Assembly: GCA_051530055.1 (NCBI GenBank) | Contig: CM121343.1 | Span: 838,389 to 902,388 of the forward strand | Origin: Neoechinorhynchus agilis | Lineage: Eukaryota; Animalia; Acanthocephala | Length of the DNA stretch: 64,000 bases | Direction: 5' to 3' | In this document: one piece after another, positions 22,582-63,349 of the stretch | How the letters are laid out: each line of letters opens with the position of its first letter | Numbering within the stretch: position 1 is the first letter of the stretch | The notes under the pieces: model-generated | Seen by the model: the letters and a program-made list of their open reading frames with translations, nothing else | Databases searched by the model: none | What the model was told of the DNA's origin: nothing | Made by a program: the position numbers and the translations under genes

Positions 22582-25149
22582 TTATTTTGAAAGTACAGAG
22601 ACAAGCGCTGAACATTGCTCAAAGAACATCATAGTTTCACTTATTTGTGGTTCACTTCCTTGAGCCTGTACAGGAAGCAGATCAGACGAAACCTGTGAAT
22701 CATCTCGGTTCAATGAATCTACATCGATCGACTTGTAGTCGTTTTTTATGGGATTAACGGCACTTTTGTGTGAATGGCACTGTTTGAAGATTGAACTATT
22801 CATGTTTGTTTATGGAGGAGAAGGAATATATTAAATCTGATTGTTTTCGGAGCCATGATCGACTACTCAGAAGCAACATCGATAAAGCCACGTTGTTTCG
22901 TATACTCATAATTAGTGGAGGAGACGTAGTTGACCCAAAACTGGTTGATATCACAAGGAGCTTTTTTAGATATGCTAATAAAATGTAAATTGTATCTTAG
23001 AGAAAAGGCAAAAGCGAAGGCAACAACTACGGATGTGGGGCAAACTACCTTCGTCTGAGATAACTTGGGCGCTCATGAGTGGAGGAATTGTGGATTTTTG
23101 CTAGGAGTTTTTAATCAGATTGTCATTCAAATATTGGAATCAACGAGTGTGTAGTAAAATGGAGACTTCATGAAATAGACGGAACAGTGCAAGTATCTAA
23201 GAGATTTAAAAGTACTCAAATTTGTCCCACAATCGCCCAATCCTTACAACAAAAGTGCTAGCTTTACGGATAAGCTCGGAAGTTGATTTAGACGTGTCAA
23301 TGGTAGTTGTAGGATTACACATGACTGATGTTGTTTTCTCCTGTCTCAACCAGGGACGATCAAGAGGTTTAACGATAAAACGGAAGTCTAGTAGATAGCT
23401 CTTATTGTCTACTTGATAAAGTTGGAGACCAATAAGAGATTTTGAGCAACGGGTATCATCCTTGGAATTCATTGTACATGCGATAATATTGTAAACGCTG
23501 TTATTGACATATCGCCATCTCATTTTTAAACCCTTTAAGGCTTTAAAAACTTCGTGCATTATATCCTGTGGTTGACTTTGACTACGTATACCAAGATGCC
23601 ATTTGCATCTTCGCCGGGCCAACATTAACGCTTCTTGATCATTACTTATCTTTTTGGAATGCCTGAGAAGAACTCTAATCCTTCAAAGGTATTTCCTTCC
23701 CAAGGAATTATATTTGAAGGAGCATCTATTGGTGGATTCAAATCTGGACAAATTGTGTTCCCTCTTATTTTTCGGGGTGAGGCATTACATACTTGGCATT
23801 CTCCTGCGCTGCTACCGGACAATGTTCTATGCCGCCGGCAGCCTTGACTGTAACCGGATGATAGTGGGACAAGTGCCGGTGAAAATCCAGTAAGTGGAGG
23901 CATGGTTTCGGGATGTGGACGATGGAGAGGGCTTTGGACGAATGATAAAAATGAAAGCCTCGGTGGACTGTTCGCCATGTAAAAATCGCTCACTTCAACT
24001 TTTCGTGCTTCGCACCATATCCTTTTATTGTCGGTAATGAGATTATAAGCTATAGATATGTGATTATGGATATCCTGCGAAAGCAAAGCTTCGTGTACCT
24101 CTTTCTCGTTGGTACCGAATTTCTCACAGACTTCCTTTACCGCATCAACGTCAATTACACTAGCATCATCCGTAGTTGGGGTTGGAAATAGATAAGAAAG
24201 TAGGTCAATCTTAAACCATTCATGATTCCGTATTTCACTTATTCGGGCTCTCTTTACGGGGTCCACTGTCATCATTATTCGTAAGAGGTCAACTACACCT
24301 TTGCTTAGATATTCTGGCACTGGAAATATTCCCGATCTAATTTTTCTAAACAAATGTTGAACATTTTCGTCGTCGAAGGGTAAAGAACCAGTCAGGAAAG
24401 CGTATAAGATCACCCCACAGCTCCATATATCAACCTCTGGCCCGGCGTAAAGTTCGCCACTTACGACCTCGGGTGCAGCATAATTTGGAGATCCACAGCT
24501 CGTCTTTAAGAATTCTCCGTCAGCCATCATGTTAGAAAGACCGAAATCGGCGATCCTGACGTTCATATTTTCATCAAGTAAAAGGTTCTCTGGTTTTAGA
24601 TCACGATGAACTATCATATGACGGTGGCAGTAATCAACTCCGCTGATGATTTGCTGAAAAAATCTCCTTGCTTCCTTTTCATCCAACTTTCCTTTTTTAA
24701 CTATATAATCAAACAATTCACCACCGGACACATACTCCATGACCATAAAAATGTCACTCGGAGTGCTGATAACCTGATAAAGTTTTATAATATGCGGGTG
24801 CCGGAATAGACGTAAATTTTGGATCTCACGCCGAATCTTCCCGACGACATCAAGATTCTTTATCTTATTACGGTTCAGGATCTTAATCGCCACAGTGTGC
24901 TCAGTGAGACAGTGTTTGGCTTTTTTAACCTTACCAAATGTACCACTGCCGAGAGTGTCACCTATTGAAGGTAGTTTTTTTGGCATTCTTAAAGTGGTAT
25001 CCTTGCCAAAATAACTGCTTCGATAAGATGTAGTGACCAATCTTAATTTGTCCAGCGTCTCCACATAAAAAGGAAGAGTTCATTGTAACGTAGTTTGAAG
25101 AACCGGAGTAAGTACGCTTTTTCCGTTGCTTTAACAACAGCGATGCCAT
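22582..25149 (-). CDS. PRKAA: AMP-activated protein kinase catalytic alpha subunit, ~631 aa (exons 25149-25024, 24962-23793, 23649-23248, 22779-22582)
   Basis: Complete kinase domain ([32 protein letters not shown]), KWHLGIRSQ beta-binding region and terminal [13 protein letters not shown] helix. Introns 23792-23650 (GTATGT..AAG) and 23247-22780 (GTAAGG..CAG) can be canonical; the first insert cannot. Extra small exons in the last intron are possible. Confidence 0.93.
24963..25023 (-). other. 61-nt non-canonical hairpin intron candidate in AMPK alpha
   Basis: Separates KIGHYIL from [10 protein letters not shown], which lie in different frames; TA on both sides, 22/23-nt inverted arms, no GT or AG at the required junction. 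Confidence 0.85.

Positions 25150-63349: not shown

Follow-up and report, generated by a model that had tools for sequence, protein, structure and literature searches.

In a 64,000-nt window of the genome of the acanthocephalan Neoechinorhynchus agilis (assembly GCA_051530055.1, contig CM121343.1, forward-strand positions 838,389 to 902,388), the genes for the catalytic alpha subunit of AMPK and for BLTP1 (Tweek/KIAA1109) are interrupted by four inserts of 61, 266, 521 and 230 nt. These inserts are probably old, non-autonomous DNA-transposon-like elements, similar to miniature inverted-repeat transposable elements (MITEs), that became fixed in coding exons and are now introns removed from the RNA. 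All four were located as described in an original prediction made from the DNA letters, and the flanking dinucleotides it named (TA, TA, TA and AG) were seen. The insert lengths correspond to 1, 2, 2 and 2 modulo 3, so that each insert shifts the reading frame. If they were read through, AMPK would end after 43 residues and BLTP1 would be broken, so the inserts must be removed. In window coordinates, the two genes and their intervening sequences are:

22582-25083, minus strand: gene for the AMPK catalytic alpha subunit, with exon 1 at 25083-25024, exon 2 at 24962-23793, exon 3 at 23649-23248 and the stop codon at 22584-22582
24963-25023, minus strand: 61-nt insert in AMPK, between ...ATCTTA and GGTGAC... 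(IGHYIL / GDTLG), TA/TA flanks
24959-25030, minus strand: predicted terminal helix of the 61-nt insert, 5' arm 25030-25004 and 3' arm 24985-24959, present in the minimum-free-energy and centroid structures
22780-23247, minus strand: last intervening sequence of AMPK, donor GTAAGG at 23247, possible in-frame AG acceptors at 22780, 22732, 22693 and others
51455-63349, plus strand: BLTP1 gene, 3,625 codons after removal of three inserts
57071-57336, plus strand: 266-nt insert in BLTP1 (gap 1), TA/TA flanks, arms 57073-57089 and 57316-57332, 82% complementary
59621-60141, plus strand: 521-nt insert in BLTP1 (gap 2), TA/TA flanks, terminal helix 59621-59640 with 60121-60140
59836-60051, inside the 521-nt insert: nested palindromic element of 216 nt, near-perfect, with 57-nt arms that are 95% complementary
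61897-62126, plus strand: 230-nt insert in BLTP1 (gap 3), AG/AG flanks, arms 61897-61915 and 62104-62122, 89% complementary

The 46.2 Mb N. agilis genome was assembled with MaSuRCA from Illumina and Oxford Nanopore Technologies (ONT) reads of about 50 pooled worms and annotated with BRAKER; the DNA came from whole worms, embryo-filled females included, and the Illumina reads provide the base accuracy (PMC12690905). A hybrid Illumina/ONT consensus of about 50 worms makes rare insertion alleles and single-base indel errors unlikely. BUSCO completeness for N. agilis is 47%, a value that has been interpreted as massive gene loss in parasitic rotiferans (PMC12256650).

The 438-residue open reading frame (ORF) of AMPK at 23649-24962 (minus strand) shares 99% identity with the N. 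agilis NCBI protein ACOME3_008725, 76% with the alpha subunit from Pomphorhynchus laevis and about 70% with rotifer orthologues. Exon 1 codes for 20 residues including IKIGHYIL, the same as in the orthologues, and must join GDTLGSG of exon 2. Exact removal of the 61-nt insert produces ...CACTACATCTTA joined to GGTGACACT..., and the orthologues are uninterrupted at this site (KIGHYILGETLGSG in P. laevis, RIGHYILNETLGTG in Adineta vaga). All frame-keeping GT-AG, GC-AG and AT-AC pairs were enumerated and the resulting isoforms were scored against a profile of eight full-length orthologues. The sole in-frame GT-AG pair at the 61-nt site (GTCACT...AATAG, 76 nt) would remove the conserved GHYIL from the kinase's first beta-strand. 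The insert ends have three equivalent readings (TA..AA, AT..AT and TC..TA). Folding predicts that the RNA of this insert is a hairpin (z = -3.3), both junctions lying nearly opposite each other and the terminal helix reaching 4-5 bp into both exons. The AMPK-alpha gene of P. laevis is a single, intronless exon of 1,740 nt (L001 6001-7740); this comparison points to a recent origin of the AMPK insert and supports the transposon reading. The last gap in the gene has a good GTAAGG donor and is possibly an ordinary intron, about 470-555 nt long.

BLTP1 is represented by four long ORFs in differing frames across 51455-63349 (1,897, 797, 593 and 398 codons), among them the 1,897-codon ORF that had been reported before and proved real. 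Cutting out 57071-57336, 59621-60141 and 61897-62126 restores a single stop-free ORF of 3,625 codons, as predicted, while the other two frames hold 215 and 262 stops. Pfam BLTP1_N and BLTP1_C match the annotated gene products. BLTP1 orthologues of 4,000-5,000 residues were found in a full HMMER search; the four ORFs are collinear with single orthologous proteins up to the last residues, and because the orthologue C-termini align with the end of the reconstruction, the gene is complete. Its 10.9 kb of coding sequence are free of any ordinary intron; in other animals BLTP1 has dozens of introns. The absence of ordinary introns from N. agilis BLTP1 and the intronless AMPK-alpha gene of P. laevis suggest that acanthocephalans have lost introns on an extreme scale and later gained some through insertions.

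The same gene served for a stop-codon simulation, in which 400 BLTP1 sequences were drifted neutrally at a set divergence. With 2.6%, by which each arm of the nested element has diverged, the expectation is about 11 stops and none of the 400 simulated sequences stayed stop-free; with 0.5%, 10% did. BLTP1 is intact, and neutral decay over the age assumed for the nested element would have made stops. This result, taken with the pooled-worm consensus, argues that the inserts are fixed and the genes in use; the simulation speaks against a pseudogene and agrees with the predicted selection. That the intron-poor host genes are under purifying selection is supported.

At the 230-nt insert (exon join ...AACTTAG to GTGGATT...), exact removal produces ...PRVADYALKANL joined to GGFELRLDHMTEC..., which aligns without gaps with 12 orthologues. 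The alternating hydrophobic pattern before the join is kept, as is the [LF]E.R[LV]DYM motif two residues after it. Full enumeration at this junction returned no GT-AG, GC-AG or AT-AC pair of 230-nt length, and the nearest canonical alternatives delete 7-34 residues and score 15-48 bits lower. The insert ends can be read equivalently as AG..AC, GA..CA or AC..AG. For the 61-nt and 230-nt inserts, the protein alignments firmly indicate that only exact, non-canonical removal would reproduce the conserved protein.

Removal of the 521-nt insert (exon join ...GCTCATA to CCGGCTT...) at the junction originally predicted leads to ...LGNALAH followed by TGFARCDENDDE (longer stretch TGFARCDENDDECSDVDFDS), which fits the ...LG.TLT.LTG of the orthologues and the acidic run after it. 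A GT-AG alternative at 59663-60219 loses the acidic run and scores 17 bits lower. A GC-AG alternative at 59631-60154, with a poor donor, has the same score as the exact junction; the boundary is therefore not fixed, yet BRAKER found no canonical bridge. The 521-nt insert is probably non-canonical. The palindrome nested in it is younger than the insert itself. Copy searches, using the repeat arms and BLAST of each insert, covered 72 kb of N. agilis sequence, including coordinates that continue beyond the window end (L002). Partial relatives of the palindrome (40-56 nt, 77-90% identical) occur at 19491-19530 and at L002 18339-18388, and no other sequence associated with the inserts seems to be repeated in the 72 kb.

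The 266-nt insert (exon join ...ACCGTTA to GCTCGTT...) is different, as the frame is likewise restored by a canonical 215-nt intron (GT 57120, AG 57334), which the public model P0122 uses. The 215-nt solution adds KQLFLTWHCFLIELIYI to the BLTP1 protein. Both solutions stand on an equal footing in the profile scores, and no orthologue alignment reaches this junction. The inverted-repeat arms bracket the 266-nt solution, not the 215-nt one; the 3' AG is common to both. Because the GT-AG pair also restores the frame, the status of this insert is ambiguous, and it may be removed canonically. The original prediction had described all four inserts as non-GT-AG. The enumeration of canonical pairs rejects canonical splicing for the 61-nt and 230-nt inserts, where no canonical pair avoids the loss of conserved residues; it leaves the GT-AG solution of the annotation at 266 nt and the GC-AG tie at 521 nt, and the boundaries of these two inserts are not fixed by orthologues.

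The feature that separates the inserts from ordinary introns is the pairing of their ends. For each, 34 nt around the 5' junction were folded against 34 nt around the 3' junction, and the duplex energy was compared with 3,000 random site pairs of equal spacing, which have a median of about -8.3 kcal/mol:

61-nt insert: -15.7 kcal/mol, p = 0.046
266-nt insert: -21.7 kcal/mol, p = 0.0037
521-nt insert: -21.2 kcal/mol, p = 0.0047
230-nt insert: -24.5 kcal/mol, p = 0.0013
canonical 215-nt boundaries of gap 1: -8.6 kcal/mol, p = 0.49
four ordinary GT-AG introns: -6.3 to -11.6 kcal/mol, p = 0.19-0.71

The ordinary introns in the window are 45, 50, 56 and 143 nt long:

288-337: homeobox intron, 50 nt, ordinary GT-AG
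14880-14924: intron of a MOSPD2-like gene, 45 nt, ordinary GT-AG
14986-15041: intron of the same MOSPD2-like gene, 56 nt, ordinary GT-AG
23650-23792, minus strand: AMPK intron, 143 nt, GTATGT...AAAAAG, used by the public model P0001, p = 0.19

Pairing is significant in the four inserts and not in the four GT-AG introns, and therefore divides them into two classes. The predicted terminal inverted repeats thus exceed random site pairs (p = 0.001-0.046), and the predicted coexistence with ordinary short GT-AG introns was also observed. The helices start 0-2 nt from the proposed junctions, and the arms of the 266-nt and 230-nt inserts have the motif GACCATTCAT in common. Other parts of the architecture are the 2-nt flanking repeats, which taken alone are weak evidence, the nested palindrome and the lineage-specific positions. 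Together with the short, degenerate terminal inverted repeats they give the inserts the transposon-derived look noted originally. Three of the four inserts have the TA flanks that a Tc1/mariner-derived MITE would show, the 230-nt insert does not, and the TA-flanked inserts can be read as A...T. The inserts carry no transposase and match no known family, and an Rfam scan of the window gave no match.

On this basis, the following sequence of events can be proposed. After transcription, the terminal inverted repeats would pair, and the exon ends would be brought together at the foot of a helix of 17-22 bp. The intervening RNA would then be cut at non-GT-AG sites and the exons joined in frame. From the DNA we infer that removal occurs, that it takes place at the RNA level, where the exact cuts lie within the 2-nt repeats, and which machinery acts.

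Several observations weigh against fixed, transposon-derived introns. In the 72 kb searched, no further copies of any insert were found, the partial relatives of the nested palindrome aside; it is therefore the architecture by itself that argues for a transposon origin. A common terminal dinucleotide and a clear branch-point or polypyrimidine signal are absent across the inserts. The canonical introns (GTA...AG) look ordinary, which counts against a generally relaxed spliceosome. The sample is small, with four elements (two of them firm), or five with the matrix metalloproteinase (MMP) case described below, and the 266-nt insert is ambiguous. The dating assumes inverted repeats that were perfect at insertion, and assumes the age of the nested element. 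Finally, a search of the protein database found no transcript-derived proteins of N. agilis, and the supplement of the genome paper holds nothing on AMPK or BLTP1.

As to the machinery, we tentatively propose the spliceosome, which would act at non-consensus sites juxtaposed by the hairpin; by analogy with the systems discussed below it is slightly favoured over SOS-type splicing. The precision demanded at several sites in one gene and the canonical-looking 3' AG of two inserts speak for it. In C. elegans and in human cells, SOS splicing excises exonic DNA transposons (Tc1, Tc3, Tc4 and HSMAR2); it is triggered by inverted-repeat pairing, rarely uses GU-AG and depends on AKAP17A, CAAP1 and RTCB (PMC12779559). 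An SOS-type route would recognise the paired repeats as a structure, excise them without the spliceosome and seal the exons by RTCB, and in N. agilis it would have to act constitutively on fixed elements, which we consider possible, as a close second. In its favour, terminal pairing is the sole feature common to all four inserts, which have no shared end signal, the inserts lie in exons of an animal host, and the proposed cuts are non-GU-AG and lie at the base of the repeat helix (within 0-2 nt), both being properties given for SOS splicing (PMC12779559). Nematodes and humans both have the pathway, which is thus plausibly ancestral to bilaterians, the ordinary-looking canonical introns make a permissive spliceosome less likely, and a few endogenous SOS substrates derive from transposon repeats (PMC12779559). 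However, the SOS splicing described so far is imprecise and yields many products that are out of frame, and exonic transposons are, according to its authors, purged over time (PMC12779559). It is described as a rescue from recent insertions with long, near-perfect repeats, whereas the N. agilis repeats are short and degenerate and the inserts fixed. Exact in-frame removal is needed at several sites, and three inserts in one essential gene of 3,625 codons demand high precision per site. The canonical-looking 3' AG of two or three inserts also fits poorly. About equally uncertain is the wider proposal that SOS-type, RTCB-sealed hairpin excision may form a constitutive and precise second splicing system on which the essential AMPK-alpha and BLTP1 would depend, exonic transposons becoming fixed and then maturing into introns, some by gaining AG or GT-AG (the 266-nt insert being a possible example).

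Removal of such elements from RNA has precedents in animals, namely in Fritillaria and in SOS splicing. The precedents named in the original prediction (Fritillaria, euglenids and Paramecium) are right, and Amoebophrya introner elements and SOS splicing have to be added. The introner elements of Amoebophrya carry inverted repeats of 8-20 nt and direct repeats of 3-5 nt across their borders, with no dinucleotide signature; thousands of copies occur in families and were confirmed by RNA-seq, and removal by the spliceosome at non-consensus sites brought together by a hairpin was proposed (PMC7789003). They are the closest architectural match to the N. agilis inserts. In both, inverted repeats pair the intron ends, direct repeats overlap the exon/intron borders, a dinucleotide signature is absent, canonical introns coexist, and the host is a parasite with fast-evolving proteins. 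In contrast to those of Amoebophrya, a dinoflagellate protist, the N. agilis elements have direct repeats of 2 nt and no second copy in 72 kb, and are known from DNA alone.

In the larvacean Fritillaria borealis, a modified U2 spliceosome splices MITE-derived AG-AC and AG-AT introns (Henriet et al. 2019, PMC13326754; reviewed in PMC11282704). More than 90% of its introns are non-canonical, AG-AC and AG-AT being dominant, and spliceosome dependence and a duplication of U2AF have been shown (PMC13326754, PMC11282704). Akin to N. agilis, this is an animal with a compact genome, in which species-specific sequences with terminal inverted repeats and non-GT-AG ends lie in conserved genes on which standard annotation pipelines fail. 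The ends of one of the four inserts, that of 230 nt, allow an AG..AC reading, which is the most frequent class in Fritillaria. Unlike in Fritillaria, the window has no fewer canonical GTA...AG introns than inserts, the four inserts are without a common dinucleotide and three have TA repeats; N. agilis, moreover, belongs to the Syndermata within the Spiralia. The nonconventional introns of euglenids (PMC11282704) are similar in their non-canonical borders, end pairing, junction repeats resembling target-site duplications and coexistence with conventional introns. However, the pairing of CAG at +4..+6 with CTG at -8..-6 is absent from the inserts, which read AAG, CAA, CAG and ATT at +4..+6 and have no CTG at -8..-6; the euglenids, moreover, are protists whose excision products are circular. 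In canonical introners (Micromonas, Aureococcus and dinoflagellates), the transposon supplies or creates the GT and AG and the element is spliced like any normal intron. This does not apply to the inserts of 61, 230 and 521 nt; the one of 266 nt could belong here, having a GT within the element and an AG as its 3' terminus.

Another explanation is that the public annotation is right, AMPK starting from an ATG in the insert, gap 1 being an ordinary GT-AG intron and the other BLTP1 ORFs being separate genes or dead remnants, so that no non-canonical removal would take place. The annotation lists BLTP1 as three genes, 51455-59718 (2,682 aa), 60129-61910 (593 aa) and 62153-63349 (398 aa), and the BRAKER models were built with RNA-seq hints, an ATG lies near the start of each downstream ORF, and the canonical 215-nt solution exists at gap 1. 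We nevertheless regard this as improbable. BRAKER, which bridged neither gap 2 nor gap 3, takes canonical intron hints only and cannot report junctions such as those proposed here. Model P0001 begins at an ATG within the 61-nt insert and thereby loses the conserved exon 1 with IKIGHYIL; it then uses the 143-nt GT-AG intron (23792-23650) and hits a stop, and lacks the conserved C-terminal exon because the last intervening sequence is omitted. The collinearity of the four BLTP1 ORFs with single orthologues also argues against separate genes, internal ORFs of a single eukaryotic mRNA would not be expected to be translated independently, and no stop has accumulated over 10.9 kb.

Precise excision from DNA, similar to that of the internal eliminated sequences (IESs) of ciliates, would mean that the assembly represents the germline or unprocessed form and that expressing cells remove the inserts from their DNA. 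In Paramecium, IES removal is excision at the DNA level and is tied to nuclear dimorphism. Three of the four inserts have TA at both ends and all have short inverted-repeat ends, as in IESs derived from Tc1/mariner, precise removal from coding sequence is needed in both cases, and the whole-worm DNA included embryo-filled females. However, the ends TATCGAAG, TAAAACAA and TAAGACAG do not fit the consensus TAYAGYNR. Nor is there support for a uniform TA-hairpin class, as had been suggested; one is flanked by AG/AG, and its nearest TA-to-TA removal, of 228 nt, leaves the frame broken. An assembly from pooled whole worms should show the somatic, excised form. We know of no animal with precise intragenic DNA excision and, to our knowledge, chromatin diminution is unreported in acanthocephalans, both of which count against the idea. 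With no positive support, DNA excision is very improbable.

Equally improbable is an artefact or decay, whether as assembly errors, as insertion alleles of a single haplotype while the second allele is intact, or as young pseudogenes; the hybrid ONT/Illumina consensus and the low BUSCO completeness would allow for it, but sequences of 61-521 nt whose ends are structured do not arise as indel errors, the consensus of about 50 worms favours fixed alleles, several inserts occur across two linked genes, and the inverted repeats have diverged while the ORFs are still intact.

Further candidates were rejected. U12-type AT-AC introns would require an ATATCC-like donor, which is absent. Single-base assembly errors are discarded, as the inserts are far too long and the base accuracy comes from Illumina reads. 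Translational bypassing or hopping does not fit, given the length of the inserts, the mismatch of take-off and landing codons and the nuclear location of the genes. A site of the IRE1/XBP1 or tRNA-endonuclease kind was considered at the 5' end of the 521-nt insert, where CAGCAGC occurs; a paired second site is missing and the geometry is not bulge-helix-bulge. In two distant BLTP1 relatives (Logan assemblies L005 and L006) the interruptions, where inspected, look like ordinary GT-AG introns and therefore add nothing on the inserts.

Beyond the window end (+ 0.9 to + 2.6 kb, L002 14881-16596, minus strand), an MMP gene is annotated as two genes, Peptidase_M10 (285 aa) and Hemopexin (174 aa), with ORFs in differing frames. 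Removal of 56 nt (L002 15581-15526, GTAAAT...GCAATA, with an AATA/AATA direct repeat) joins both domains and keeps the 11-residue DDxxGIQxLYG spacing (...DDHDAFIKIYG...); a canonical-looking GT-AG version of 49 nt breaks the frame. The ends of the 56-nt segment are unpaired (p = 0.55). This is possibly a fifth case, one whose 3' end is not AG.

Within the window, the MOSPD2-like gene (14275-18929) has CRAL_TRIO and Motile_Sperm domains; at 14540-14705 it contains two frame changes that could be bridged only by very short GT-AG segments at 14681-14702 (22 nt) and 14571-14594 (24 nt) or by a 40-nt intron with a weak donor. Directly downstream of AMPK lies a GIY-YIG-like ORF fragment (22028-22342, minus strand, ...GVYKIPCIECDRIYVRQT...), which from its sequence we take to be Penelope-like; a protein search returned no homologue. 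Two satellite arrays were found, one at 5725-9648 (113-bp unit, about 35 copies, 99% identical, GC skew about -0.4) and one at 38557-50069 (181-bp unit, about 63 copies, 11.5 kb), whose end lies about 1.4 kb upstream of where BLTP1 starts its coding sequence. At 30089-31000, both strands show diverged tandem repeats of about 110 bp, which give rise to repeated short ORFs with the motif DISKGE.SS.

Neither the N. agilis genome paper nor the BUSCO gene-loss paper mentions introns, and the literature searched for non-canonical introns of Acanthocephala yielded nothing relevant. Elements of this kind are already known; their presence in Acanthocephala appears to be unreported. In the public models AMPK is cut short at both ends and BLTP1 falls into three genes, and the 47% BUSCO completeness may partly be an annotation artefact rather than gene loss, caused by inserts that pipelines limited to canonical introns fail to bridge. 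If transcripts confirm exact removal, Acanthocephala would be, after Fritillaria, the second animal lineage known to us whose core genes contain fixed non-GT-AG introns derived from transposons, and the first such case in Spiralia. Canonical and non-canonical classes would then coexist in an intron-poor genome of 46 Mb, in which the birth of introns from transposons could be traced step by step.

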